From positions 51,622 through 85,063 of the forward strand of contig MU619330.1 of assembly GCA_025201805.1 (NCBI GenBank): a DNA stretch of 33,442 bases, written 5' to 3'. Below are positions 1 through 31,400 of this stretch, piece by piece. Numbering within the stretch: the first letter of the stretch is position 1; each line of letters opens with the position of its first letter. The position numbers and the translations under genes were made by a program. The notes under the pieces are model-generated. The model had not been told where the DNA came from, ran no database searches, and saw nothing but the letters and a program-made list of their open reading frames with translations. Source of the DNA: Parasitella parasitica NRRL 2501. Lineage: Eukaryota; Fungi; Mucoromycota.

Positions 1-284
1 GTAAAGTCTATCTCCTCACTCAAATAGATTTAAGTTATCTTGAGTCTGCTGATATGTCGGTTAGCACAAAGTTAAGACGCTAGTTACGCAGTATTGTCGT
101 ACATGTTAAATTGCGAGAATAGAACATTTATCCACAGTTTAAGTATATAAAGGTTCATCTACCTGGCCAGTAGATGAACGGGAGCTTTATACACCTGTCG
201 ATTTGATAATAAAACCTATACCTTATCAAGTTGACTTTATTGTTTTTTTTATTATAATTTTTTTCCGTGAATCCATATAACAAT

Positions 285-926
285 TTATACTGATTCCACA
301 GTCTCCATTTTGAAATGTGGAGCTTCCAAGTACTGGTTCAATTTCTTGAGGTTGAAGACGGGACGAATGCCCCCGTCCTTCTTGGGGATGACAAATATTG
401 AGCTGTAATAGCCTGGGATTTCCTGGACTTGCTCTGGTGACACTTTCTCGATTGCTGACTTCTGTAACAGGTCTTGAATTGCTTGGTCTATAAGTTGTGA
501 TTGTTCTGGAGAAAAGGGAACTATTGATGTTGGGTTTGTAATTACTGGTGGTTGTGTGTGAAAGAGAATTTGATATCCATGTTGAATTGTGGTGTTGACG
601 AATGAGTTGTTTGAGATTGTTATCCATTTTGTAAAATACTTGCTGAGACGACCCCCGACTGGATCGTTGTTGGTCGTTGTGATTGCCGAATCTACTGGCG
701 AAAAGGATTGCTGGACTTCTTGTGGTTGTTGTTGTGGTTGGCTTGGCGAAAATTGGTGTTGGCATTGTTGTTGAATGAGGCCTCGTTGCTGCTGTTGTGG
801 GAGTTGTTCTGGAAACCACCCTGCTGAGAGGGTGGACCTGGCCGAAAAAAAGATTGATCGAAGCCATTGGAAGTAGAGCTGGTACTGTTGTTGTTGCCAG
901 GTTGAAAGCGACGTCGTTGACGACGG
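285..926 (-). pseudogene. Reverse transcriptase N-terminal fragment in the -1 frame relative to gag; absent from the ORF track
   Basis: Frame open from TAA(927-929) to TAA(285-287). RT motifs start at PVGGRL (662) and stop after HFKMETVESV, before the catalytic YxDD region. No in-frame ATG precedes the RT motifs. Confidence 0.85.
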
Positions 927-1570
927 TTAACAGTTGCTTCACGACTAGCCTTACGAGCTGCTGTTTGTTGAATCAACGTGTTTTGGAATTCATCCAGAGG
1001 CAAATTATAGTTTACTTCTGAATCAGATTTCACCGAAAACGAAGGGTTTACAGCCCTAAGGGCTATGTTGTTATGAGACTGAGTCATTGCAGCACAGATA
1101 TGAAGCAACAGCTTACGCACATCGCTTAACTTGGTACAATAACGTTCCAAATTAGGATTGCCAGATTCTGAGGATACAAGTTTATGACTGAGGATATCTA
1201 ATGGACGGAAGACAGCCGATAAAAGATATTGCAGGTGCTTGAGATTGTTGTCCTCATAACGTTGTCCTTTATTCATGAGACGTTCTGCCGTAGGAATGGT
1301 CGCCGGGGCCTTGTATTCCATGTGAGCCATTGGAGGGTAAGACTCAATGATGGTCTTACGTTCCGAATCTGAAAGCATAGGAGAGGTTTGTAAAGGAGCA
1401 TCCAAATTCATGACTTCAGTAAGTGCTTCCGAAGGTGACCAGTCGTAGTGAGGTTGAGTTGCAGTGCCATCCGCTGACTGCATAGGTGCCAAATTGGTGT
1501 TGTTGAGTTGTTCTTGTAAAGCAGCAATTTGTTGCTGCATCAATTGGAATTTTTGTTCAATAGAAGACAT
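692..1570 (-). CDS. DIRS-like gag/ORF1 protein
   Basis: Intronless ORF, likely start MSSIEQKFQ at 1570. N-terminal coiled-coil-like segment, RRQRRR basic patch, N/Q-rich tail; lies directly upstream of and overlaps the RT frame. Confidence 0.75.
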   Translation of the reverse strand: MSSIEQKFQLMQQQIAALQEQLNNTNLAPMQSADGTATQPHYDWSPSEALTEVMNLDAPLQTSPMLSDSERKTIIESYPPMAHMEYKAPATIPTAERLMNKGQRYEDNNLKHLQYLLSAVFRPLDILSHKLVSSESGNPNLERYCTKLSDVRKLLLHICAAMTQSHNNIALRAVNPSFSVKSDSEVNYNLPLDEFQNTLIQQTAARKASREATVNRRQRRRFQPGNNNSTSSTSNGFDQSFFRPGPPSQQGGFQNNSHNSSNEASFNNNANTNFRQANHNNNHKKSSNPFRQ

Positions 1571-1949
1571 TATAAATTTTGCTAGTAATGACCGAGCGAA
1601 AAAGAATATTGATAGTATAATGATCAAATTTATTTCCTTTATATATCTTTGAATTCGCTGCGAAATAAAGGTTAAAGAAGATTCCAGCACAATCATATTT
1701 CCTATTTTGTTCTGACGGTCTCAAGAAATTCTTGCGAGAAATTTCTTTCGACCTAGAATTGATTTTTACCCTTCTGGATGGCTTCATTTTGGCCCTCTAA
1801 ACATAGGACCGGAAAATCCTAGATTCATTTTGGTCGAGACAAGATTTTGATTTTTGGGAGAAAAAATAAAGCCACAGTTGTAAACAAAATATTAATGTGT
1901 AGGTATCGACATGGAGGTTTGTTTGGTCAACTTTATAGAGCTGAATATG

Positions 1950-8746: not shown

Positions 8747-11175
8747 ATGAAAAGTTGGACTGGAAATGTAAAATAAGAAATGATGCTTGAAGTAACGGAA
8801 TGAGAGGGTTTAAAATATATTCTTTTGATTGCTAGAATTCTCCAGCTGGAAGCCATTCACCGACATCCGCTAATTCACCACTGCAGCAGCCTATTATATT
8901 TGTACCTGCGCAACAGCAACAACAACAACAACAGCAGCAGCAGCAGCAGCAGCAGCCATCATCGCAGTCCAGCTCTCCTCAACAGGTAGTGTTCATTTTT
9001 GCGTCATAATCTCTCCCATTTATTCATACTGTAAAAGCTTCGCTCTCCCAATTCTTTACATAAATCCACCGGTGAACGAGATATGCCTAAAGCAGGACCT
9101 ATCAACCGCTTGAAAAATGCAACAAGAGATCAAATTCCTGTTAGCAAATCACCTAGACGTCAAAAATCATCTCGATTCTATGCAAAAGAAAAAATTCAAT
9201 TGGAAAGAACGCCAGGTTTTCATGGTAAGTCATCATCTATCATCGCTTCACGGTTCCCGGGACTTGAACGTTTTAAACTAGAAATACCGCCTCACCTGAG
9301 AAATGATTTGTTTATCCAAAAGCTGCGTCAATGTATGGTTATCTGCGACTTCTCAGATCCTTCATCTGAGCTGAACGAGAAAGAAATCAAACGACAAACA
9401 CTCCAAGAAATTCTGGAATACGTTGGGAATAACTTGGGTGTTTTGACATCTGAAGCGCCGTACTCTGAAATAATAAAACTATTTGCCATCAACCTGTTTC
9501 GGACTATTCCGCCTCAAGTGAATCCAACAGGTGATGCCTATGACCCAGAAGAAGACGAACCCGTATTGGAACTGGCATGGCCTCATTTGCAGATCGTGTA
9601 CGAGTTCTTTTTGAGATTCTTAGAATCGCCCGATTTCAACATTAATTTTGCAAAACGATACATTGATCAAAAGTTTATCTTGCAGGTAGGAGTATTTGGT
9701 ATTGGGCGTCATTTGGTTAGGTTTTTAACTGCTTATTAGTTACTCGAGCTGTTTGACAGTGAAGATCCACGGGAACGAGATTTCCTCAAAACAACACTGC
9801 ATCGCATTTATGGCAAATTCCTGAATTTGCGTGCATTTATTCGCAGATCTATCAACAATATATTTTTCCAATTTATCTATGAAACAGAACGACACAACGG
9901 CATTGCCGAACTACTCGAGATTCTGGGTAGTATTATTAATGGATTTGCATTACCTTTGAAGGAGGAGCACAAGCTATTTCTTAGACGTGTCTTGATCCCA
10001 TTACACAAGGTGAAATCCTTGGCCGTGTATCACCCTCAACTGGCCTATTGCGTAGTCCAGTTTTTGGAAAAGAGCCACACATTAGCACAGGAAGTTGTGA
10101 ATGGACTATTGAGGTATTGGCCCAAGGTCAACAGCCCCAAGGAAGTCATGTTCTTGAATGAACTGGAAGAGGTATTGGATGTCACAGAAAATGCAGAGTT
10201 TCAGCAATTTATGGTTCCTCTATTCACAAAACTGGGACAATGTGTATCCAGCACACACTTCCAAGTGGCTGAAAGAGCGCTTTATTTTTGGAATAATGAA
10301 TATGTTGTTAATCTGATGGCTGAAAACATGAATGTGCTTATGCCCATAATATTTCCTACGCTGTACAAGACTTCAAAGACACATTGGAACAAGACAATTC
10401 TCGGTTTAGTCTATAATGCCCTGAAATTATGTATGGATATCAGCCCCGAATTATTCGATGAGTGTGCTAATCAGTACAAACAACAACGGCAAATGTAAGT
10501 TTGTCCCATCCTACAAGTGAAATAAGTGCTGACTACAAGCCAATTTAGCGAAAGAAAAAGACAGAGGGATAGAGAAGAGAACTGGAAGACTTTACAGCGC
10601 AAAGTCTCTGGAACAAGTGCAGTTGCCATCACAACCTCTGCTGATGATGATTTTTACAGCTTTTCCTTCCCTCCGAGACCAAACTTTGGTCAAGATGATG
10701 AGGAAGATGATGATGAAGACGCATACGAAGACGAAGATCATGATCATCAGATACAAGATTTTGACATCATGACTGACGAAGAAACAGATGCTGAAGTGGA
10801 TCAAAGTAACAGCCAGCAGCATGAAGAGCATGATGTTATTCATCCTGATATGGTATGTCTGTTCAGATCCCTATATATCTTAACATGCAAGTTTAACTTA
10901 AGTGTGATATATCATAGCAACAATTCAACCCAGGTCCCCAACAGCAATTCCAACAATTTAGACGTAAATCTATTATACCCGTCGATGAAACTGTAAGTGA
11001 CAGAAATAGAGAGGATCTTTCAAGTCTTGGGCATTGTGTACTCAACCTCAAACTTTAGGTTTTCAATGAATTATCTCGCCACATTAGTTTAGATGAAGTG
11101 ATGAACCAAGCTCCGGGAGCAGCTTCGTCTTCATCAGCAGCAAGTAGCCCTATAGATAACAACAATAATTTTTAG
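8747..11175 (+). CDS. RTS1: Protein phosphatase 2A regulatory subunit B' (B56 family, Rts1/Par1-like), multi-exon
   Basis: B56 motifs [102 protein letters not shown] and C-terminal RRKSIIP. The first exon (ATG 8747) is inferred from splice phase. Confidence 0.95.
8911..8955 (+). repeat. CAA/CAG repeat encoding Q15 in the PP2A B56 N-terminus
   Basis: 15 consecutive CAA/CAG codons in the frame of predicted exon 2. Confidence 0.9.
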
Positions 11176-11656
11176 ACTGGTCAATTACAAGGACATTTCT
11201 CTCTCTTTTTTTTTTATTTTTATTTTTTATTTTTTTGTTATACACATAGAGTTAATCGAGCTATTTACCATTCTTTAATGAAAAAAAAAATTGTCGCTCA
11301 TACATTTGTTGCAACAAATTCGAGCACTTTTCATCTTTTGCATAAACTACAACTGTCGAGCTATGGCTGTCAAAGTACGTCCGTTGGCTAAAAGCTTATA
11401 AATAAAGACAGCATCCTATCTTGAAAGTTGCATTAAATTAATCAAATTTACCACTGTGGGTTCGTTTTTTGAAATGTACGATCCTCGTAACTTGGTTGCA
11501 ACTTTTACTATTTTCGTTTGCTGCACAGTGCATGGTAATACACAAAAACGCGCGGACAAGAGAGGGCTTACGTGTCCCCCAAACTGATTTGAAATTTGAG
11601 TTATAAACAATTTTGTTTGAGCAGGATTTATCAGTTCTTTAATATAAACGAAACAA

Positions 11657-14600
11657 ATGAGCAACGAAATTCAATTACTCGGTAAGCTAAACAGAAAATG
11701 AAAAAGAAGCCCCCCAAAATGACCCAACTGTTAATGTAGAAAATGTTCAGTTCAAGCTCGCAATCTGTAATACAGATGAAGATTTAGAAAAGACGATAAA
11801 GACCTTTCTCCCACCCGTTTTACTCAAACTAGCCAGCACCAGTACCGAAACTAAAGGCAAAGTAGTTGAAATCCTTTCCCATATCAGTAAAAGAGTAAAG
11901 ACCAACGACAATGTCAAATTGCCCTTCGATACGCTTTTATCGCAATTCACAAATCCATCTGTGCCCACATCGGTAAAGAATGTCACTTTAATATATCTGG
12001 GGATGGCTGCAAGTCGTTTATCTCCAGAGGAAACTGCTCACCATGTGCCTGAATTGTTGAGAAACATTAGTAAAAGACCTAATCAACAAAGGATTCCATT
12101 ACTCCACATCGTATTGCCTGTAAGTGCTGATTAGGAAAGAAGGATGTTTCGAGCACACTGTAGCGACATACTCACGTATTATATAGGTTTTGATTAAATG
12201 GAAAATGGATCATGGAAAGCAATTAACAGCAAGAACCACCATGTTTCATTTCGATGAGAATCCCGACGATATTCCAGTTATTTTGGGCTTCTTTTTAGAT
12301 GTCATGTTGTATCAACCTTTGACAGCCAGAGAAATTGAAGAGCAACAAGAAGAAAATACCGTACCAAAATATCCTGGATTAAGCCCCTTGGCAGTAGAGG
12401 AGGTCACCAACAATGGGAAAGTTCAGTGGACAACTTCCAAACTGAAAGATGCAAAGTTAGGCATCATGAACCTGATCTTGACCCCAATTTTTACAGATAG
12501 CGAGAGATTACCCTTACTGATCGCGGGTGTATGTGATCCCAATCATCAGGTTGTCTCTGCCTGCGAAGATGGCATGCGTAGATGGACGGGAAATGTGAAT
12601 TACGAGGATGATACAACTATAAAATCCTTGTATAAGTTGTATTTGGGCTCTAAACCTATAGACAAAGAAGCAAATAAGGACGATAGATCTCAGGCACCAA
12701 ATCCTATCAAATTGCGTATTCTACAATATTTGGCAAAATCAATTACTGCTACAAACATGGTAGCACCCATGATCCAGGTTATTTTTGATGGTATCTATGG
12801 TGAATCGACAACTGCCAAGTTGCAAAGATCAGCCATGTCATTTTTGCAATGGTGTGCTCGGATGGTAAGCGAATTAGGGGCAGTAACTATGGTACATGTG
12901 TTTATACTGAAGCATGGTGTGTAGAGCAAAGAATCAAGCATAGGTCCCGTCGCACCTATCATTATTTCTGGTTTGCTAAAGTTCATAAATGAGAACGAAG
13001 AAACTCAAGGTTATGATGCAGAAAGTATCAAGGGGTATGCCTATATTGCCTGTGGCCTTGTAGCCAAAAAGGTCCCTAAAGTGGGATTAGAGGACACCCA
13101 CATGCTCTCTCTCTTTTTCGACAATTTAGAGCAAGAACAAAAGAATGTTCGTACTTATGTTCAGGATGCGCTTTCCTCCATGATTGAAATCTATGTGGAT
13201 ATTGCGCCGGAAGCACCTATATACAACGATTTGCAACAAATTATATTGAAAGCAGTTCAAAAGAGCGATTCGTATTCTCGTTACATGGCACTGAAATATG
13301 CTAATGCCATTTACCCATTTTCATCTGTATTTGCTCGCTATGTGTGTTTACTAGGCAGCTCTAATGCTGTTGTCAAGCTTGATGTGAAGGAAGAGGCTCG
13401 CCGTGGTTTAATTCCTTTTATGCGTAACAAGTATGGCCTTGTAGAAAACGTAGATGTGATTTCTGCCTCAGAGCTACCAAAATTGAACGAGTTGATCACC
13501 TATATCCATGATCACCGACCCGACGAAAACTATACGCTGCTGTCTAAAACACCGGTTGTGAAAGGATATCCTGTAGAAGTCTACTCTGAAATATTGCGCT
13601 TCTTGCGTATGGTTTGGATCCTGCAAGTGAACCCTACCAACATTTTAATAGATCAGTACGTCGCTGATAAGGTGGAAAACAGCATGTCTGAGGATCCTGT
13701 CACCATGTTAAATTTCAAGAAAAGCGTTACAGAGATGTGGTCAGATAATGACGACAAACAAGTGCTTCAATACTGGCTTGAGTTTGTTGAAAGTGGGTTG
13801 AATCCTGAATTAAAAGGTACTTTCAAACTACTGGCATATTCGTACTTGTTTCGCTAATAATAAGAGGCCTATAGATTCTCTCCTGCTCGCGACATCTGCT
13901 AAATGTTTGTTGGAGATCATTTCGCTTGGCCCGTCTTCTATTACAACTACTTTTAAAGATAGACTCTCATTTTTCAAATCGCTGTCGCTCTCAGATAAAC
14001 TTGATGCCCGCATCTTAGTGTCCCATATATTTGGTATCATTGCTAGTAATGATAGCGTACCGCAAACAGAGATTGAAATCATGTTGTCCGAATTCTGTGA
14101 CATCTTAGAGGCTCCTGAGGGCAAACAACAGCAGGCCATGGACCATCGTCATGGTGCTACGCTTTCCATCGGTTATTTAGTGGGTCGCTGCCATTATCGA
14201 AAACGCGACTTACCCCAGGCACTCAAGCAGCGCTGTGCCTCCAATCTTGTGCCTCTTTTGGAAGGCCCAGCTAGTTCACCTTTTTACATGATGGCCAATG
14301 CTGCGTGTCAAGCTATTGCCGAAATCGGTCGCTCCCAGTTGCTGCCCTTCCCTACTGAAAAGAGCGTTGATGACTCCATGGACGTTGGTACCACCATCGA
14401 GGATGTCATTGAAAAATTGACTAAATTAGCAAATACGTGCAAAGAAGCCAAAGTTCAAGAAAAGGCCACGCTTGCTTTGGGCCACCTTACTATTCCTCTT
14501 GTGCAGCAAAACCATACTGCACTCGTCCAAAAGATTGTTGATGCTCTTTACACTACTGCTGATACCAAACAAGTTGAACTAGCATTTGCCAGCGGCGAAG

Positions 14601-17600
14601 CGTGGTCTGTTTTGGCATTTGGTTGGAACTCCCAGTCGATGCAAAAGTATAAGGATATGAGTGACATGCCCATGCTGCAAGATCGAGACCTTAATGAAAG
14701 CTGCTATGCGTTCCAATCCGTAATTGATAAGATGATCCGCACATTTGTCACAAGCAATCGCTCATGGTATCGCAAAGCTGCCTGTATATGGTTGCTTTCC
14801 ATACTCAAGTTTGGTAAAGACCAAAAACTTGTCAAGACCAATCTGGGCAACATGCATGCCTCCTTTTCTCGCCTCTTGGCTGATCAAGATGACTTTACTC
14901 AAGAATGTGCTTCCAAAGGTCTTGGTTTAGTCTATGAGTACGGCGATGTCAAGATTAAAGAGGACATGTTGTACGCGTTGGTTGGCACTTTCACTGAGGG
15001 CCGACAAATCCAAGCACAGTCCGTCACCGATAACACTGTCTTGTTTGAAGAAGGTGCTTTGGGGGAAACGCCCGATGGCAACTCCATCACCACCTACAAA
15101 GAGCTGTGCTCATTAGCATCTGAACTCAACCAGCCAGACTTGATATACAAATTCATGAACCTCGCCAACCACAATGCCATGTGGACATCACGCCGTGGTG
15201 CAGCATTTGGATTCCAAAATCTGATGGCATTAGCAGAAAAGGAAATGGAGCCCTATCTACCTCGTTTGGTCCCCAAACTCTACAGATATCAGTTCGATCC
15301 CAACCCTCGCGTCAACCAGACTATGAAAGCTATCTGGAAATCTCTGGTCAAGGATAATCAAAAGACGGTAGACACTTACTTTAACGAAATTATGAAAGAT
15401 CTGTTGACTGGGCTTGGCAATCGTCAGTGGCGTATCCGCGAGGCCTCTTGCGCTGCAATCACTGATTTAGTTATGGGCCGTCAGTTGGCTCAAATCGAAC
15501 CTTACCTTGAACAGCTGTGGCAAATGTGTTTCCGCGCCCTGGATGATATCAAGGACTCTGTTCGCCAAGCGGCCACTGCAACCTGCCGTTCATTGACAAA
15601 GCTAACTGTACATTATTGTGATCCTACCATGGTGGCTATGGCTGATGGCGTAAAGGTCATGGATATTGTGATGCCTTTCTTGCTTCAAAAGGGTATTGTC
15701 TCTGATGCTGAAGATGTGCGCAAATTTAGTTTGGATGCTGTATTGCGTGTATGCAAAACCGGCGCTGCATTGCTAAAGAAATATGTTCCTGAACTCGTTG
15801 ATACACTGCTGCAGTCTCTATCATGTAAGACTCGTTATTGTCAGTGTATTGACATTGCTCGCTAACAAATATATTTTATAGCTCTGGAACCGCAATCTAT
15901 GAATTACCTCAGTTTCCACGTAGACAAGTACAATATCTCCCAAGAGCAACTGGATAATGCACGTTTGAGTGGCGCTAAAAACTCGCCCATGATGGAAGGA
16001 ATCGAACATTGCGTTACTCAAATTGATGAGCAGGTAATGGAAGAACTGACTCCTCGAATCCTCCATATTGTAAGAAAGGGTACTGGCCTTCCCACCAAGG
16101 TATTTAAATTTGCGCATTATTCTTTCTGTTTATTGATCGTGATAAATTTCTAGGCTGGCTGTGCGCGATTTATTGTCACGTTGGTGATGAACCGTAGATC
16201 TGCATTCGAGCCGTTTGCTGATGCTTATTTGAAGGCGCTGAGTGGCACTATCCGTTCGAAGAACCCTGTCATCCGAAAATCGTATGCCACTGCTATCGGC
16301 TATGTTTGCCAATTAGCTACCTACGATCGGCTGGTCTCTGTTGTCAAGCATTTAAAGAAGCTCTATATTGATGAAGAAGGTAAATTTTTACCGAAATACT
16401 AGAACTACGGCGCTGCTTAACACCATATTTAAAATCTGTGTAGACGAAGATGGCAAGGCTGGCAGTGCTGTAACAGCCGTTGAAATTACGCGGTTTGCTA
16501 CAGACCGAGCCAACTCAATTGCGACAGCCATTGTGCCTCTCATCTTTTTTGGTGAACATGATCCTGAAAAAGGTCTGAGCAAATTATGGAAAATGGCATG
16601 GGAGAATCTTACTTCTGGTACTCGCAGCATGGTCACCATGTATGCTAATGAGATTTTGGAGTTTGTCCATCCTTTATTGACATCCCCGTCTTGGAAGATC
16701 AAACAAACTGCTGCCCTTACTATCGCCGACATGTGCAAGACTGCTGGCAAGGGTGTACAAGTGCATGCCCGGAAACTGCTGCCTGTACTAGTTTCTACTT
16801 TGGCAACTCGTTCTTGGGCAGGCAAAGAGAATGTGTTGGATGCATTTGTCCAGCTCTGTATTTCGGTCAAGGAATCGTTTGGTCACCCTGAAACAGAACT
16901 CTCACTTGCAGAGGTTACCAAGATTATGGTCCGAGAGGCTAAGCGTAAAAACAGAGCTTACCAACGCCACGCGTTGGTTTCTTTGATCAGCTTCAATGAC
17001 TGTTTTGCTGAAAAGGTGGATGTGCTCCAAAGCGAGCAGGAATTTTTGACCGAATTATGCGAAATGGATGAAGCAGAGGCAATGGAAGACGAAGATCATG
17101 ACAATGCAAAGCCTTTGCTGCTTATGATCAAGGCCAATGCATTCAAAGCAATCGCATCAGCTTATAGACCCAAGATATTCGTTAATCAAGAAGCTCAAAC
17201 AGCACCTCTCGCAGAGATGATCACAAACTGCGTTCGAGGAAACGTTTGGAATGTGCAATTATCAATTCTGCAGAGTCTCAGAACATTTGTGGAACATGCA
17301 ACCTCGTCCGGATTGCTTAATGAAACGGTGATGGGCGCTTTATTGAAAGCTGCATTTGATTCTTTAGACGATTTAAAGTACTCGGCTATTCGATCAGCTG
17401 CCGTTGACCTTTTAGAGCAACTGGTGTCAAGCGGATCAGGTAAATATAAACGTAGACCAGAGAAGGGCCTTTTCATGTATTTTATACTCACATATACTCA
17501 TAGTCCAAGCAAACGCAAAGATTGTATTTGCACAAGGTGTTTCTAAATGTGTGCAGCAGGAACCTATCGCTTTGATTAAAGATAGATTACAGAAACTCTC

Positions 17601-20242: not shown

Positions 20243-22520
20243 TTATTTGTCCAAGTCAATGTTCTTTTCGGTCAACGTTTTTTGCAATTCATGAAACATT
20301 TCGATGAATTCTTCTCTTTCAGTCCTCAGGATGGCTAATTCTCTCGACAGCATGTTCTGGATTGAGATGGAATCATGAGCATCAGAAATATGTAGATAAA
20401 AAGTGAATAAACCTCATTTTTCTCCCGTAATTTGGCTGAGTGCTTGCACTTGAGCCTCAACTGCTTATTTTCTTTCTCGCCTTGCACCTGTAGATTAGCA
20501 AATTGCGCGTTATATAGCGTATTATAGTATCGAGTGTGGGCTTACAAACAAATGTTTCCATCGGTCCCTTTCCTTCTGCAACATGTCCTGTAAAATTTAG
20601 AAATTAATATAAATAGTGAACGCAATGCCTATAAAATGTGATCTACATTTACCATTTTCTTTTTTAAAAACGACATTTTTGATAATGTGAGATCCTTTAT
20701 CTTGTTGAATGTGCTGCGGTGCCTATTAAGCAGCAGGGCTCTTTTGCGGTTTACTTTGGATTGTATCTTTGCCATATCCTTCTCCCACTTTCGTTCTTGT
20801 TGAGCTATCAGAGGAAAGATCGACTGTAACGAAAAGGCTTTCATTTGCAATGACAATATACTCCATACCTGCGAATTCTTTTTGCTGTGTTTCCTTTTTC
20901 CCCAGTAAACTGGATAGTTGCTCGCTGGTGTTTTTTAAACGTTGGATAAACGATTTTTTCTCTTCAATATCCTGTTCATTACATCCACATGTATCATGAA
21001 AATGTTGCTTCTAGATTGATTTGAAATTATGCACATACGCTGTAAGCATCCTGCAATTTATCCTTTGAAAAGGAATTTAGTCGCCAGAAGTAAGCAATCA
21101 ATGGTACGAACTTTGTATTCGTCCAGCTTGTAGTTATGCCTATCGCTGTCTTTGGATACCGCAAACTCATTAGCAAGCGATACAACCCTTATTCTTTGTA
21201 ATTTTTCCAGTAAATCTAGTGTCATTAGGGTCTCTCTCTTGTGATATTTTAGGCATTCCTATTCAAATGTATCCAATGCTTTCAGTAATTGCATAAAATA
21301 CATTTGGGATAGACACACTCACATTCATGTGTGCAAAGACGGCGAATTGTCCTTGCGAGCATATGAACCTGGCCACGGTATGTGTTAGAAAGTAGTAATC
21401 TGTAATCACTGGTACTCCTGGTGAATTTTCCCCAGTTTGAGTGTCTGCAATATACTTGATCAAGGATCCTACAGCGACAACAAGTGTCAGCTAGCCAAAA
21501 AAGCAAAATATCTCTCTTCTTTTACTTAGATTGTCGAAACAATTCGATATTCCATTCACATTTGCATCGGCAGCTGTGCTTGCGCTTGGTAACAATTCGA
21601 TAAACTTGGGTTCCAAAAGGTCGAATAAGAAAAAACTGCCAAACCTATTCGTTGATGAATTGAATGTATTGATTTTTAATACACTGGGTATCTTTGAGCC
21701 CTTTAAAACCAATTTCCATATTTCCTCGATGCTGTTTACTTGCTTCATCCAATGGTCAAGGCCCTTTTTAATTAATGAGCTGCCTATGGTAGCAATGTAT
21801 GAGTAAGCGTTGGTTTATGCATGTATATTTGAAAAGGGTCATCCTACTGGCACAAACCACATTTCTTCTGAGATCATAGCAATACGTGTCAGTAAAACCA
21901 AAGAAAGCATACTCGATTTTAGTGTTTATCGGATCCAACTCGGCAGCCAAGCCGTCAAGGAGCGATTTCTTCTGCTCCTGCCTAAGGAATACATTCGACA
22001 CATTTATACAATGCAAATGGCTTACTACGTACTTTAACTTGAATGTGGCAAAACTCCCTCTGAATTGCTTTAGTTGCAGTTATATTCATACGCATTATTA
22101 CATGTACACCCACCCTACTTCCATAAACAAAGCGGCAACATTATGTCCTGTTCGAATATATGAAATACGGCACCCTAATTTACTTATAAAATCGCATTGT
22201 TATACCTTTTGCTACTAAATTTGCTAATGTATGTTTCTCTTCGTCAAAAGCCATCTTGTCAGGGTCATTACAGCATTTATCCACTTTCCATTCCAACCTA
22301 TTCTCTAACGCATTAGGGTCAGACACAGGAGATATATACAAGTTGTATACTTTTGGTGGACTTGTGCTTGAAGAATATCCTGCGAGCCTTCCTTCTTTTT
22401 AATAGACAGACAAGTGGAATGATCATGCGGATATAATTCTCGCAACTCTGCTTGCGTCTTATGGAGATGAACAAACGTTTTTATGCTGCTAATATGGACA
22501 GTAGCTAAATTTTTAAACAT
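20243..22520 (-). CDS. Multi-exon (about 15) protein with a degenerate N-terminal kinesin motor-like domain and a C-terminal coiled coil
   Basis: Exons join in frame over GT-AG introns from ATG 22520 to TAA 20243. Kinesin-like elements occur in canonical order (IKTFVHLHK, WKVDKCC, KGHNVAALF, IEYAFFGF..CYDL, GL....VNSIEEIWKLVLKG, GSFFLFDL, ETLMTL). The gene itself is well supported; the kinesin assignment is by-eye. Confidence 0.7.
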
Positions 22521-22596: not shown

Positions 22597-24325
22597 CTAG
22601 TGTGAAGGAAGATACTTGTAGGGGTTCATGATGCCATTAGGATCAAGCATGTTCTTCATTGTTTTCATCATCTTGATCATGACGGGAGACTTGGAATAGC
22701 CCAAGAATTCATTCTTTGCTACACCTAAACCATGCTCAGCACTAATGGATCCTTGATGATTAGCAACCCATTCAAACAGGTAGGGCTCTATCAGAGCAGA
22801 AACACGGCTTTCAAGACGACTGGCAGCAATGTTCAAATGCAGATTGCCATCACCAACATGACCATAGGCAACTACATCAGTTACTGGTGAATCAGGATGT
22901 CCAAATACACCGCCGTCTCTCAAATGCTGGCGCATATCTTCAACACACTCGTATAATTTGGGCACAGGCATAGAGATGTCATACTTGTAAACTGCAGGTT
23001 CCTTTCCAAGCGCCTCGGTAAAACCTTCACGCAGGCTCCAGAGTTCACGAATTTGTGTTTCGTCCTGTGCAACAACACCATCCTCTGCAACGCCATCCAC
23101 CATCATATTCTCGAGGTAATTTGTTAGTTTCTACAGTTGCTGTGTCAGCCTTATTTTTGCACGCAGAGACGACAATATTCGCACATTACCTCATCGTCGT
23201 GGTCCTTATTCGAACCGCTGGTTTCAATCAAAATATAGAATGGATATTCCTTTTCCATGACATCCTTGGGAGTAGCGTGCTTTTTAAACATCTCAAGGGC
23301 GTTGGCATCCCAGAATTCGAAAGCTATAGATGTAATTCAATCATTAGCCGCCATTGTCGTCATGGCATGTTATTGACTTACCAGACAAAATTTCTGAAAG
23401 CTCTACACGAGATTGCTTGAACGCCTTTTGGACATCTTCAAAAGAGTTCAAGCCCAAAAGAGCGACATTCACAGCCTTCGAACGGTGAGGGGTAAGGATG
23501 GACACGCCTGTGATAACACCAATTGTACCCTCAGATCCAATAAAAAGCTGCTTTAAATCGTAACCCGTGTTGTCCTTTCTCAAGGTGGACATGTTGTCTA
23601 AAATAGTGCCGTCAGGGAGCACAACTTCCAACCCAAGGACAGTGCCATGAAGAGATCCGTAGCGCAATAGTCTCAAACCGCCTGCGTTGGTAGCGATATT
23701 GCCGCCAATATGACAACTGCCCTTGGCTCCTAAATCCAATGGCATCATATAACCTTTTTCACCCAACCAATTGTCAAGTACTTCAAGCACACAGCCAGCA
23801 TCAGCTGTCAAGATACCTGCAAAGAAAATTGTATTACTAACTGGCTTTTCCCACCCCTTAAAAATTTGGAAATTTACCTGATACATTATCGAATCCGCGA
23901 ATTTTATTCATGCCCTGCAAACTCAAAACCACTTCGTCGAATACGGGAACCGATCCACCGACTAGACCAGTATTACCGCCTTGAGGTACAACAGCCAATC
24001 TGTACGGGCAATCAAGGATCAGTAACTTGTCGGCGACAAGATTCAAAAAAAAAAAGAGGACACTTACTTTTGTTGGTTACAGTATTTCAGGATAGCAGAT
24101 ACTTGTTGTGTAGTCTTTGGCTTCAATACAAGCTGTGATTTACCGCGAAACTTGTGCATCCAGTCGGTGTTGAAGGCGAATAAGTCGTCCTGATTGTCAT
24201 AGATAAGGCCATTTCCACCCACAATTGTTTTAAAATAGTCTACATCTTGGCCAGTGAGCTTTTTGTAGCAGCAACAACAAGTTAGTATTTCCTTGCAAGA
24301 GCCGCACAGCCAACAAAACTCCCTC

Positions 24326-24362
<37 letters not shown>

Positions 24363-24564
24363 AGTTACTCACCTTTTTGAAATTTTCATTGCGAACGTAA
24401 CCCGGGAACTTGTCGACAGTATAAGACACTTCTCTAGTTGCATAGGAACGGCGAGCACATAGCATAGGCACGGTTTTAACTGCAGTGTTTTGGACAATGG
24501 GCTTGATGGATGTCAAGGCTACTCTGCGGGAAGCCAATCGTAGGCGCGAAGCAATTGACAGCAT
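22597..24564 (-). CDS. DLD2: Mitochondrial D-2-hydroxyglutarate / D-lactate dehydrogenase (FAD-linked oxidase), multi-exon
   Basis: Arg-rich presequence; [93 protein letters not shown]. Confidence 0.96.
24331..24360. repeat. (TC)15 microsatellite in DLD2 intron 1
   Basis: Seen directly in the sequence. Confidence 0.95.
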
Positions 24565-25340
24565 GGTGTAATGAATGCTTATAAATATATATATATATGA
24601 AAAGAAAAAGAGAGAAGAGGAAGAAAGATGCAGGATCCACTATTAATTGACGAAAGCGGGGTGGATTTATGTAACTATCCAAAAGCGAGGGGGTTGTGTG
24701 GTGAGTCAGTCGTCTACTTTTATGGGCCAAAAAGATGTGCTTTGGGTTTGACTCCCGCAAAGAAAAAGGATGATCCTTGTGATACTGCACCGTATAGCAA
24801 CTTTTTGAATTGCATAATCTAACATACTTTTCAATCAACTACTCTATAGTGAACATGTCTATACAACAGATGCTGCTAAATTGAATCATCTTTCATCTCG
24901 CTGCCTTATCTAATCTTGCTATGTTACACAGAACGATCTTTTTTGATGTTGACACTAGTCAAGGTGCCAACGACGATGGCGTCAAATCTTATAAAGTTGG
25001 TGCTGTTTGAACGACGATAGGTCGAGTTTTTCATTAGGGGCTACTCGTTAAAATGTACATGAATCGATGGTGATCTTGATTCAGGATTTTTAGTGCTATT
25101 TAGCGGTAGCTTTTCAGAATTCTCGCGGATATGCATTTCTAATATAACTGACTCTTGCTTTATTGGCTAGTGGACATCTTCCACCAGACAATTGCGAATT
25201 TTTTTCAAGTTGTTCATGTGGGTGAACCGTGGGCTGCTGATGCTTTTTTCACGCCCAGTAGTGGCAATATATTTTTGAAACAGATTTATCCTTTTTCTCT
25301 CTCCTTTTTCTTTATATCATCGTTCTGCTTATCTGTGGAA

Positions 25341-28014
25341 ATGACCAGTAGTCCCCAAGGGCGCATTATCAATGTTACTCATCAGATTCCCTACGAACTA
25401 GCCTTGGAAAATGAGATTTGGAACATCACTCCTCGACGAGGACATGGCGCAATGTATGATGGAATTCATTCATTGCAACATCAATGGGAGATTCTGTTCA
25501 TTGGCTGGACTGGCCACATCAATCAAGTAGAGCAGGAATTGGATGGGCACATCAGAGGACCAGCCCATCATTTCAGCAAGTCGCAAAAGGCGCAAGTGTT
25601 CAAGATATTGAAAGATAAATACCAGTGCTTGCCACTATTTATGGGCGGGGAGATTGTTTCTGGCCATTACGATGGTTACTGCAAAACGAGTAATGATAAA
25701 GCAGAGCAAGGACAGAACATTGTTATATTCTAACGCGCCGAAAAACACTAGTGCTGTGGCCCTTGCTACACTATATGATTTGGAATAATGCCACTGACGG
25801 TAGATTGGAGCGAAAACAATGGGAAGCGTATGCAAAGGTCAACCAGCTTTATGCTGATTTTGTATCCGACGTGTATCAGGAGGGAGACATCAGTATGTGT
25901 AGTAGCTCAAGTTCTACATAACTCAAGCTAATCTCTCGATATTCACTGTAGTCTGGGTGCATGATTATCATCTACTGCTAGTTCCATCCATGATAAGAGC
26001 AAAACATCCAAAGGCTCGGATTGGATTATTCGTCCACTCGCCCTTCCCCACCTCCGAGATCTTTCGATGCTTACCAAGTAGGACACTTTTCCATTCATGC
26101 AAGTGGTCGCATGTACTCACACCTGATTATTATTATTGTTATTATTATTATTATTATTATTATTTAGAGAGACAAGAAATTCTAAAAGGCATCATCGGAG
26201 CCAATCTCGTCGGATTTCAGGTACGTTGACACTACTTTTCTGCGTGACAACAGATCACCGCCTCAACGTTCTTTCCCAGACATACGCCTATGCTCGACAT
26301 TTCCTTTCAACGTGCACACGAGTGCTTGGGTACGAATCTACACCTGAAGGATTGGGATGTCTTGACGGGCATTTTTGTCATGTGGGCACATTTCCCATTG
26401 GAGTGGATCCAGTGGAGATCGCATCACGGTGCCAGGCACTCAGCGTACAATCCAAAATCAAAGCAATAAAAGAAATGTATGCCGGCAAAAAGATCCTGGT
26501 CGGCAGAGACAAAATTGATCTTGTCAAGGGGGTGCTTCAGAAAATGGCTGCGTTCGAAAAGTTTTTGGTTGATTTTCCAGAATGGAGGAACAAGGTGGTC
26601 ATGATTCAACTGACTGACGGTTCCACTAACGAATCTGCAAAATTGGAACACAAAGTCTCTGAAATTGTAGCACACATTAATAATAAATATGGAAATCTAG
26701 AGTTTTCGCCGGTCTATCATTTTCATCACCAAATTCAGTTGGACGAGTATTATGCCCTGCTATCCACTGCAGACGCTGCAGTCATTACCGCCAATAGGGA
26801 CGGTATGAACACTACCAGTTTAGAGTATGTCATTTGCCAGGAGGATCGGCATGGTCCTCTGATCCTGTCCGAATTGACAGGCACGGCTGGTTCTCTTAGT
26901 TCTGCTTTAATGGTGAATCCTTGGGATTATGCTGATGTTGCAAAAGCTATAAATGAATCCTTGCTTATGTCAAAGGAAGAGAAACAATCAAGGCATATGG
27001 TGAGTTGGCTATGTGCGCATTGGATTGCAAAGTGTCGCTTAAGTGCCTCCTTTTTTTTTCTATAGCAAATGCTGGCACATGTAAAGACGCATACTGCATC
27101 CTTCTGGGCTCAATCTTTTGTCAAAGTGCTTCAAGAATCTATCGCTGCCTCAGAGCAATCAAGTTATACCCCGATTTTAGAAAAGAACGAGCTCTTGAGG
27201 CGCTATCATGGCTCTAAAAAGCGTCTTTTATGCTTTGACTACGATGTAGGTGGATACGACCAGTGGTAATTCAAACTTGATACTGACGAAATGACAGGGC
27301 ACATTATCGGCAGTGAGAAAGACGCCAGGATCGAGGGCGCCTACTCCAGCCATGTTACAAGCCCTTCAATCGCTGTGCAACGATTCTAGGAATCAGGTAT
27401 GGGCTATTTCAGGTAGAGATGAAGCGACATTAGACCAATGGCTCGGCCAAGTGAAAGGACTAGGATTAAGTGCAGAACACGGCAGTTTTGTCAAATATCC
27501 CAAAAGCAATCGCTGGATTAATCTGCTAGAGCATTTTGACATGAGCTGGAAGCATGATGTGTTGGATATCTTTACATATTATGCAGAGAGAACCACGGGC
27601 AGCTTTATCGAGCACAAAAGGTGTTCTGTTACATGGCATTATCGACTTGCCGATCCTGAATACGGGGCGTTTCAGTCAAAAGAATGCCAAAACCATTTGG
27701 AAAACGCTATCCTCTCAAAAATGCCTGTGGAAGTTTTGGTGGGTAACAAGAATTTGGAGGTTCGGCCTACAGCTACGAATAAAGGCGAGATTATCAAGAG
27801 ACTTTTGTCTGCGAACCAAGACATCGACCTCATCATGTGTTGCGGCGATGACAGAACAAATGAAGACATGTTCAAGATGTTGAAAAAGATAGATTCGCCT
27901 GAATTACCTGTGTTTACGGTCGTTGTCGGCATGGAAGACAAAAAGACAATGGCGGCCTGGAGACTGCCAACTGTGGAAGATGTGCTGAGCACTATCCAAG
28001 GCCTGACAGTTTAA
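25341..28014 (+). CDS. TPS2: Trehalose-6-phosphate phosphatase/synthase, Tps2-type (GT20 plus HAD phosphatase domain), 7 exons
   Basis: RIINVTHQIP, WVHDYHLLLVP, HSPFPTSEIFRCLP, GRDKIDLVKG, RDGMNTTSLEY (Tps2-type rather than Tps1), FDYD|GTL, ISGRD, LSAEHG, KNLEVRP, GDDRTNEDMF. Confidence 0.92.
26126..26164. repeat. (ATT)n microsatellite at the 3' end of a TPS2 intron
   Basis: About 13 imperfect ATT units ending just before the tttag acceptor. Confidence 0.9.
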
Positions 28015-28472: not shown

Positions 28473-31400
28473 ATGGGTAGTTCGGAAAATAAAAAAGCAG
28501 AAGAGAAGCCATTGCCATCAACAACACCAGCAGCAGCAGCATCATCATCATCATCCATAACCAACAGCCATGAAGAAAATCTTAAAAAAAAGCCGCTGCC
28601 CAATGCCAATCTACGAGTAGAAACAAACAATATAGGAACACCACAGTCATCGCAGAACACAGGATCACAGAGAATGTATCCAGCAGCAGCAGGGTCGATT
28701 ATGAGCAATTCAGCTACTCCAATGACTACTACAACAACTGCTACAAATAGAACTCGACATTACTCGACCAACAACAATACTCGACCTAGGAAAACCGAAT
28801 TGCCTACAGATACTAGGCCAGAACGGACACAGAGGCCTGAGGATTTGAGACGGGCTCAATATTTGGTCAACTCATCTAGTCATTCCAATGCCCCTAAAAG
28901 CGCTGATGACAAGGATAAAACAAACAGGTCAAAAAGAAAGCCTGCAAACTGCTGGACAACAACTAGTTGGATTTTGACGTGGTGGGCACCTCCCTTTATG
29001 TTGCGAACATTTGGTGAATATTATAGCTTAACCGGAAGAGATATCAACCAAACTAACACTGCATATTACAGGTATTAAAGATAAAAACATGCAGCAGGCA
29101 TGGCGTGAAAAGGTATCTCTAGTCCAGGTTATTATCTTTTTATGTGGTGTTGTTGGCTTCTTGACATTTGGCTTCAATGCCACCGTGTGTGGTCGACAAG
29201 CTAATCGCATTCGTCCTACGGGCGTCGAGTACAACCATATTGTCATTTCTGGAAGAGCTTTTGACTTGAAATCGTTTAGACACCCAACACCTGTGATTGA
29301 TATGCCTGGCAGTGGCGACCTGCAAGAGTTGGGCGTCGGTGGTCGTGATTTATCATTTCTTTTTCAGACTGTGAATTATAACTGCAAAGGCATTCTGAAG
29401 CCTATTCAGTCTGATGATGACAATGGCAATGTAGTTAACTATTTTCCTTGCGTCACACTAGATAGACTAAATCCCAAAGTCAATTCTACTGACAATCCTC
29501 AGCGCAATGGCTGCCATATCAGTACAAAATCTCGCTTGGCTCTGCGTCGTTTGGATGTCGTCGGCGATGTGTACTACAACTGGACAGACATCCAAAAACC
29601 AGGCACTAGTTTGGTCGCTTTCAATGGGTAAAGGGCTTCTTTTATGTACAATTGGAATGCCAACTAAATTTATGACCTAGAAATGTGCTGGACTTATCTC
29701 GTTTACGTTATCTCACGCCAAACATCCCTCTGCCAATCCAGGTAGCTCAAATTGTAGGCCCTGGTAGTGCATTCATCGGCAGAGACGCCACCTACTGGCT
29801 CAGTACAACGGCTGATCGACTACAGATTGGCAAGTGCCTCACTGATATCCTTAAAGTGGGCGTAGTCGATACAAGGTCAACTGGCTGCATTATTTCCGAT
29901 ATTGTTTTGTGGGTATCGCTCGCCGTCATCTTGGGCGTGGTCCTGATCCGCTTCTTTTTGGCTCTTGTTTTTGGCTGGTTTATATCCTGGAACCTTGGCA
30001 GTATTCGAGAAGAAACCGACCAAGACCGGCGAAAACGGCAAGAAAAGGTGCTTGAATGGGAAATGAACAATGCGGAAGAAATGCACTACCCAAGAACACA
30101 AAGCATTGCTTCTATTCCGGTTGCGTCTGTAGTCTCTCAAACAGGGCCTGCTGTGCCAGCACCTTTGACGGCTGCTGATGTGCGAAATTCATTTGCTACC
30201 GATGAGATGCCTCATTCAGCCATCAACTCGCCGCAATTGAACCAGCAGCAGAAGGCCAAGCGCCGTTTCTTCCCTACCACTTCAAGATTCACGCAGCCTA
30301 ATTCGCCGCGCTCCCTCAGCAGCTCGCGCCATTTTGGCACACCTGCTAGTATGCTGGATGGCAGCTACAGCAACATGGCTTCACCAAACGTACCTTATAC
30401 CCTGGGCTCGCAATTCTTTCGGAACATGGACGACAATCAATCGCAAAACAACGCTTCTATCCTGCAAGCACAAACACACAATTTTAATTTCGACCTCATT
30501 CACACGTTTATGGTAGTTACCTGTTATTCTGAAGGCGAGGAAGGGTTGCGCACCACACTGGACTCCCTAGCCAACACGGATTACCCTAGTTCGCACAAAA
30601 TGTTGCTGGTCATCTGTGATGGCATCATCACTGGCTCTGGAAATGGCAGCTCCACGCCTGATATTGTCCTGTCCATGATGAAAGATGATCTCGTACCTCG
30701 CGAACAAGTGCAACCTTCGTCGTATGTCGCCATTGCAGACGGTACAAAGCGCCATAACATGGCTAAAGTCTACGCGGGCTATTACAGCTACAACACTGAC
30801 TCTTCCAAGAATCCGGAAGTTGTCCCCGAAGACCAGCAGCAACTGGTACCAATGATTGTAATCGTAAAGTGCGGCACAGAGGCTGAAGCATCAGACAAAA
30901 AACCCGGCAATCGTGGCAAACGTGATAGTCAGGTCATTTTGATGAACACCATGCAGAAGGTATATTACGGTGAGCGCATGTGTGATCTAGAATATCAGTT
31001 TTGTAAAGCCATTGTCAAATTAACTGGGAATCATCCTTCACGATTTGAAACATGCTTGATGGTAGGTTTATCTCGAAAGATCATGCCGGCTCCAATTAAT
31101 CGTTTTTTTTTTTGGGGGGAAAGGTCGATGCTGATACCAAGGTATATCCAGATTCTTTAGCACGAATGATAGCCTGCATGTCTCGAGATCCTTATATTAT
31201 GGGTTTGTGTGGCGAGACCAAGATTGCGAATAAAGGTGATAGCTGGGTCACTGCTATTCAAGGTTTGTGCACAAACGAACACAGAATCGTTTAGTTTTTT
31301 TCCAAATTCTCACTCTTTTTTTTTTCCTATAGTGTTTGAGTATTATATATCTCATCATATGAGCAAAGCCTTTGAATCAATCTTTGGGGGCGTTACATGT

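Follow-up and report, generated by a model that had tools for sequence, protein, structure and literature searches.

The window, a stretch of 33,442 nucleotides (nt) at C94:51622-85063 in a 32.8-megabase assembly of Parasitella parasitica (Mucoraceae, Mucorales), is eukaryotic DNA with short GT..AG introns. On its minus strand, from position 22520 to 20243, it carries an intact gene of 14 exons that encodes a protein of 505 amino acids (aa). With a probability of about 0.88, this gene is interpreted as a pseudo-kinesin, that is, a kinesin-derived gene that has been maintained although its product is dead as an adenosine triphosphatase (ATPase). A three-frame reading and a check of the coordinate frame found zero internal stops, and the 505-aa model minus the 27-nt exon 4 is letter-for-letter identical to a 496-aa public protein, hypothetical protein BD408DRAFT_435390 of Parasitella parasitica (here P0075). 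Database and Pfam searches were conducted with the exons of the gene taken singly, while whole-protein work was conducted with P0075 and with the orthologue P0005 from Mucor circinelloides (EPB82547.1). Gene structure was compared with that of a syntenic orthologue carried by a Logan contig, L001.

A search with exon 6 returned exon-sized relatives and a paralogue on contig C16 of the same genome. A profile of this exon, run against 1.84 billion representative proteins, yielded 64 relatives, full-length annotated proteins among them; the profile of exon 6 alone found no kinesin among PDB sequences. A family profile built from 29 sequences (A3) returned kinesins as its top eight PDB matches, and most of its matches with E < 0.01 were kinesins. 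The best match was a Candida kinesin-8 (E 8.6e-9), Drosophila kinesin heavy chain was matched at 1e-7, and the alignment spanned switch II, alpha4, alpha5, beta8 and alpha6 as far as the neck. A second profile, headed by P0075 (A5), gave 13 PDB matches at E <= 1e-3, and all 13 were kinesins. Alignment of the family with kinesin pieces of the same genome by hhalign gave a probability of 93.7% and an E value of 1.8e-7 over 247 columns and reached the P-loop and switch I positions.

Structure prediction pointed the same way. The AlphaFold model of P0075, with a predicted local distance difference test score (pLDDT) of 82.7, matched OSM-3 with Z 26.4 and a root-mean-square deviation (rmsd) of 2.9 Å over 285 residues. 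The best 50 entries in the structure search were all kinesin motor-domain structures and all catalytic heads; Vik1 and Cik1 were not among them. The model of P0005 (pLDDT 78.8) gave Foldseek E values of about 1e-13, the matches listed being all kinesin motor-domain structures, and was superposed on a kinesin motor domain with Z 26.9 and rmsd 3.0 Å over 283 residues. In both models the strands and helices follow the order of a kinesin head and are succeeded by a short strand at the neck-linker docking site and then by a single long helix. The kinesin-fold head of P0075 occupies residues about 8-312 and the helix residues 318-489 (~170 residues). With 42% charged residues and zero proline in the tail, the long helix is presumably a coiled coil through which the protein dimerises.

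The canonical N-terminal kinesins (kinesin-1, -2, -8 and -12) share this fold, element order, neck-linker position and following coiled coil, and they provide the best sequence and structure matches. Near the top of the match lists kinesin-8, -1, -12, -2 and -14 appeared together, and no single parent kinesin family can be named. Because of the two E values (8.6e-9 by profile, 1.8e-7 by hhalign) and the fold Z of 26, the resemblance to kinesins, as measured on profiles and models, is far beyond chance. A first-pass annotation, made from the letters of the window, had proposed an N-terminal kinesin-like fold with a coiled-coil-like tail. The fold was recovered by the profiles, by hhalign and by both AlphaFold models with their structure searches, and the tail corresponds to the long helix 318-489 of the predicted structure. 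The check by AlphaFold and Foldseek that had been proposed with it returned kinesin motor matches, and the motifs of the nucleotide pocket are degenerate.

Compared with the canonical N-terminal kinesins, the window protein has lost all ATP-binding motifs together with the basic residues that contact tubulin, and it carries deletions of 9 residues after the P-loop and 15 before switch I. At the P-loop, GxxxxGKT was aligned with EVGGSFAT, in which the first Gly is replaced by Glu, the second Gly by Phe and the Lys by Ala, and the nine-residue deletion follows this position in the hhalign alignment. At switch I the 15 deleted residues belong to loop L9, and SSRSH was aligned with GSKIP. Switch II reads DLLEPK in place of DLAGSE, with the Asp and Leu kept and the Gly and Glu lost. 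The N-terminal beta1 strand has no RxRP. Asn, Asp, Phe and His stand where kinesin-1 has basic residues in contact with tubulin (the Lys of NINKS, then the Arg, Lys and Arg of PYRDSKLTR).

The same state was observed across the family. GxxxxGK[ST] was found in 0 of 20 members in the motif columns and a DLLxP-type switch II in all; the switch II aspartate was kept in 26 of the 26 members aligned there, and the Gly and Glu were absent in every member. Most members carry a GS/C-K-x-P remnant at switch I. As judged from these columns, the replacement motifs of the GSKIP and DLLxP types are themselves conserved. The first-pass annotation had described these losses, and much of its description stood: the P-loop is lost, with its Lys and both Gly gone, DLLEPK replaces DLAGSE at switch II, ..FVHLHK.. 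stands at beta1 where RxRP is missing, and every kinesin-like peptide string that it quoted is present in the stated order. Its deletion of switch I was correct for the 15 residues of L9, but a conserved remnant, GSKIP, aligns with SSRSH. Its splice at the P-loop (..MEQFRGSF..) is probably wrong, as the orthologues back ..MEVG/GSFATF.. (the slash marks the junction), although neither version restores GxxxxGK[ST].

From the motif losses we infer that the head is no motor and has no capacity to hydrolyse ATP. As an alternative we considered a highly divergent kinesin that is still active, binding and hydrolysing ATP through non-canonical residues. The invariant switch II Asp (26/26 aligned members), the Ser-Lys pair that persists at switch I in many members, those of the window's group included, and the intact fold would all fit such an enzyme. 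This reading is nevertheless very improbable, since no member has a P-loop Lys or GxxxxGK[ST], both the Gly and the Glu of switch II are absent throughout, and a deletion has removed 15 residues of L9/switch I.

The gene model was established by comparison with orthologues. All 13 introns are GT..AG and measure 49-67 nt, and the exon lengths of 34, 27, 134 and 258 nt are identical in the window gene and L001. The splice between exons 1 and 2 was confirmed by L001, in which the two form a single 262-nt exon (170+92 nt). Intron 1 (window 22298-22350) is precisely absent from L001:5332-5593, and the difference is a clean gain or loss between related species. Exon 4 is skipped by P0075 and by a Mucor bainieri model (P0074); it was retained here because it is conserved at equal length in L001 and is also found in the proteins of Mucor circinelloides, M. 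fragilis, M. ambiguus, M. velutinosus, Choanephora and Benjaminiella. Its skipping in the two public models is explained either by alternative splicing or by misannotation of a small exon. Exon 9 (24 nt) is present in P0075 and conserved in L001 and Mucor circinelloides. In L001 an in-frame stop lies just upstream of the acceptor equivalent to that of exon 10. An initial exon model, containing introns of 28 and 31 nt, a 12-nt exon and the P-loop splice of the first-pass annotation, was dropped for its implausible introns, which were replaced after comparison with L001, P0005 and P0075. The resulting gene and its elements are as follows (window positions).

20243..22520, minus strand: whole gene from start to stop codon, 14 exons, 505 aa; by frame check, and equal to P0075 apart from exon 4
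22351..22520, minus strand: exon 1, aa 1-57, holding the beta1 strand, with ..FVHLHK.. where kinesins carry RxRP; fused with exon 2 in L001
22206..22297, minus strand: exon 2 (beta2, alpha1)
22114..22147, minus strand: exon 3 (beta3; ends ..MEVG), 34 nt as in L001
22033..22059, minus strand: exon 4, 27 nt, P-loop position and start of alpha2 (GSFATFKLK); by orthologue conservation
22044..22121, minus strand: P-loop remnant EVGGSFAT, spanning intron 3, aligned with GxxxxGKT; by hhalign and column table
21848..21981, minus strand: exon 5 (alpha2, beta4)
21526..21783, minus strand: exon 6 (alpha3, switch I remnant, beta6, beta7, switch II remnant, start of alpha4)
21686..21700, minus strand: switch I remnant GSKIP, aligned with SSRSH, the 15-residue deletion lying just upstream; by hhalign and column table
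21605..21622, minus strand: switch II remnant DLLEPK, aligned with DLAGSE; by profile alignment, hhalign and column table
21323..21468, minus strand: exon 7 (rest of alpha4, L12, alpha5, beta8)
21365..21412, minus strand: L12/alpha5 equivalent, in which Arg, Lys and Arg of PYRDSKLTR become Asp, Phe and His; by hidden Markov model alignment to kinesin heavy chain
21112..21258, minus strand: exon 8 (alpha6, neck-linker-like strand ..VVSLAN.., start of the coiled coil)
21039..21062, minus strand: exon 9, 24 nt; from the public model, L001 and Mucor circinelloides
20869..20971, minus strand: exon 10
20653..20804, minus strand: exon 11
20546..20587, minus strand: exon 12
20413..20487, minus strand: exon 13
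20243..20356, minus strand: exon 14, including the stop codon
20267..21141, minus strand: region of the C-terminal long helix (P0075 residues 318-489), presumed to be a dimerising coiled coil; by AlphaFold secondary structure and composition

The gene proposed at this locus by the first-pass annotation is therefore real and on the minus strand, its frame being intact and its product equal to P0075 apart from exon 4. The in-frame splicing that had been described was reproduced, with 14 exons rather than about 15. A separate difference was seen in the public model P0005, which at residues about 214-236 is without the conserved ..NGIxNCFDNLR.. segment at alpha4; other Mucor species have the segment, as does a genomic read-through fragment (P0003), and the P0005 model likely contains a wrong in-frame intron there. 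The analysis thus corrects public gene models, two of which skip exon 4 and one of which, that of Mucor circinelloides, likely has an incorrect intron.

Selection on the gene was assessed against the L001 orthologue. Over 364 codons the two are 64% identical, with proportions of nonsynonymous (pN) and synonymous (pS) differences of 0.20 and 0.77, the latter saturated. The sequence comparison places the gene under strong purifying selection, and no ratio is derivable as pS is saturated. Disagreement among the public models over small exons (two of which, P0075 and P0074, omit exon 4, while that of Mucor circinelloides differs at alpha4) might be taken as a sign that the locus is a decaying kinesin pseudogene or a functionless annotation artefact. 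That explanation is extremely improbable given an open frame over 14 exons with canonical splice sites throughout, orthologues in several of the genera that make up the window's group, relatives in other families of Mucorales, the pN of 0.20 beside a saturated pS, the conserved GSKIP and DLLxP motifs, and the confident AlphaFold models. The open frame and the contrast between pN and pS also bear out the earlier description of the gene as intact and maintained.

All relatives that carry a name are from Mucorales (Mucor, Parasitella, Choanephora, Gilbertella, Benjaminiella, Mycotypha, Helicostylum, Cokeromyces, Pilobolus, Rhizopus, Radiomyces, Phycomyces and Lichtheimia), a distribution obtained from an exhaustive search with the exon-6 profile. 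In a tree of the head region, the window protein falls in a well-supported group (96/97) with proteins of Mucor, Choanephora, Gilbertella, Benjaminiella and Mycotypha, and the remaining sequences include those of Lichtheimia, Phycomyces, Rhizopus, Pilobolus and Radiomyces. The wider spread of these remaining sequences suggests a later origin of the window's group by duplication, the tree being unrooted. On the sequence evidence, the family comprises at least two old paralogous groups.

The paralogue in the same genome (G000:C16:325270-327600, equivalent to L002:3277-5593) has the same head-plus-coiled-coil layout, with a coiled-coil exon of 287 aa, and retains more kinesin-like residues, including GYN at or before the start of beta3 and ..VLTNIL.. 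at alpha5; PF00225 misses it too. Several members outside the window's group (P0016, P0030 and P0059) end in basic, GRP-type, AT-hook-like C-termini, for which the Pfam AT_hook model gave E 0.12, below threshold. These C-termini are a hint of DNA or chromatin binding. Inspection of the 3' region of the C16 paralogue by eye revealed no AT-hook.

Dead copies of motor heads are rare, and where they have been studied, as with Vik1/Cik1 and KIN-B, they are regulatory or targeting subunits of motors or mitotic complexes. The closest analogue of the window protein is KIN-B, which likewise has an N-terminal dead kinesin-fold head followed by a coiled coil and a matching pattern of losses. KIN-B of Trypanosoma brucei is an orphan kinesin that partners KIN-A in the chromosomal passenger complex; it is lineage-restricted, has a coiled coil after the head, and is without the P-loop, switch I, switch II and many of the alpha4-L12 residues that contact tubulin (PMC10987093). 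KIN-B is kinetoplastid whereas the present family is fungal, and the likeness is one of architecture; in view of these distributions, common descent of the two as dead heads is unlikely.

A fungal precedent is provided by Saccharomyces Vik1/Cik1, which have a kinesin-fold domain without a nucleotide site and a coiled coil that pairs them with the catalytic kinesin-14 Kar3 (PMC3384419, PMC4338441). The dead domain of Vik1/Cik1 is C-terminal, after the coiled coil, whereas that of the window protein is N-terminal (residues 8-312), and Vik1/Cik1 do not share its arrangement of an N-terminal head with a neck-linker-like strand. In yeast Smy1, animal KIF26A/B and Costal2/KIF7 the kinesin head is likewise N-terminal, its ATPase activity is impaired or absent, and the proteins serve as scaffolds or tethers; KIF26B is described as lacking ATPase activity (PMC3387196). 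As far as is known, these proteins are still recognised by standard kinesin models and keep more of the motifs, whereas the window's family scores nothing with PF00225.

In the preferred explanation, the head, having lost its ATP machinery, would work as a non-catalytic subunit instead of a motor, and this subunit would dimerise via the coiled coil. By analogy with KIN-B/KIN-A or Vik1/Cik1/Kar3, the partner may be the paralogue, a catalytic kinesin, or the protein itself acting as a scaffold, and these options taken jointly are given an even chance. The main rival is a static microtubule tether or cross-linker, in which the dead head would bind microtubules in the manner of a nucleotide-free kinesin head and a homodimer would anchor or bundle them with no movement. 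Such a role would be consistent with the full motor fold retained in the AlphaFold models, including alpha4, L12, alpha5 and the docked neck-linker-like strand, and some of the best structural matches are kinesins in microtubule-bound, ATP-analogue states. The motor-homology domain of Vik1 also binds microtubules without a nucleotide site (PMC3384419). On the other side, Asn, Asp, Phe and His stand in place of the tubulin-contact basics of kinesin-1, and the comparable head of KIN-B did not localise to the spindle (PMC10987093). A canonical microtubule-binding role was rated lower because the basic contacts of alpha4/L12/alpha5 are replaced. This loss, read from the alignment, argues against a tether and leaves a partnered, non-catalytic subunit more likely; a tether is regarded as rather unlikely.

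Several observations weigh against the interpretation as a kinesin-derived, non-catalytic subunit. Scanned in six frames with PF00225, the genome yielded 86 exon matches within true kinesins, and neither this contig nor the C16 paralogue had any; 0 of 27 full-length family members were matched even at E <= 10. The kinesin hit with PF00225 that the first-pass annotation had looked to as a check was thus obtained neither at the locus nor in the full-length proteins. More broadly, the exon-by-exon scan matched no Pfam family with any exon, and pieces of the paralogue and orthologue likewise matched nothing. The homology rests on profiles and predicted structure because P0075 alone, searched against PDB sequences, found no kinesin and indeed nothing. 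Catalytic death is predicted from motif loss, and the AlphaFold model of P0075 was built without the nine residues of exon 4, which lie at the P-loop position. Vik1/Cik1 bind microtubules although their sequences are poorly conserved, and microtubule binding is therefore compatible with the loss of the basic residues.

A more far-reaching arrangement can be envisaged by analogy, in which proteins of the two old groups of Mucorales pseudo-kinesins would associate by way of their coiled coils, forming a motorless 'kinesin' that links chromatin or centromeres to the spindle and partly replaces the usual kinetochore linkage. Several members of the wider group combine a long coiled coil with C-terminal GRP-type, AT-hook-like motifs, and Mucorales have lost CENP-A and CENP-C (PMC9252888). 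Such a pair would be likened to KIN-B, which serves the unconventional kinetochore of trypanosomes. The proposal is speculative and considered improbable.

The literature was searched for the accession numbers of the family and for Mucorales pseudo-kinesins, and no paper on the family was found. Nearly all members are labelled 'hypothetical', and in UniProt the orthologues from Mucor circinelloides and M. ambiguus bear the automatic name 'Kinesin motor domain-containing protein'. The protein had been called undescribed in the first-pass annotation; this holds for the literature searched, but the two automatic names exist and the architecture was already known from KIN-B. What has been found is a new family of an already known kind, the pseudo-kinesins. 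It constitutes a whole family of dead kinesins, missed by PF00225, in an order with an unusual, CENP-A-less kinetochore. Mucorales include agents of mucormycosis. Mucor species carry orthologues, one of them represented by a partial public model in Mucor lusitanicus, which is genetically workable, and this makes the family a tractable target. It allows the question to be asked of what a kinesin head serves after losing ATP hydrolysis and probably its canonical tubulin contacts.

Long open reading frames lie at the start of the window (1-1700), among which one of 334 aa at 692-1696 had no Pfam match at E <= 1e-5. The neighbours of the pseudo-kinesin gene encode the PP2A regulatory subunit B56, the proteasome adaptor ECM29, a FAD-linked oxidase (D-lactate-dehydrogenase-like), a trehalose-phosphate synthase and a chitin synthase, and jointly occupy the following positions.

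9083-17546, 22597-24600, 26136-27065 and 29685-31160: ordinary neighbour genes

The FAD-linked oxidase and trehalose-phosphate synthase genes also adjoin the orthologue in L001.

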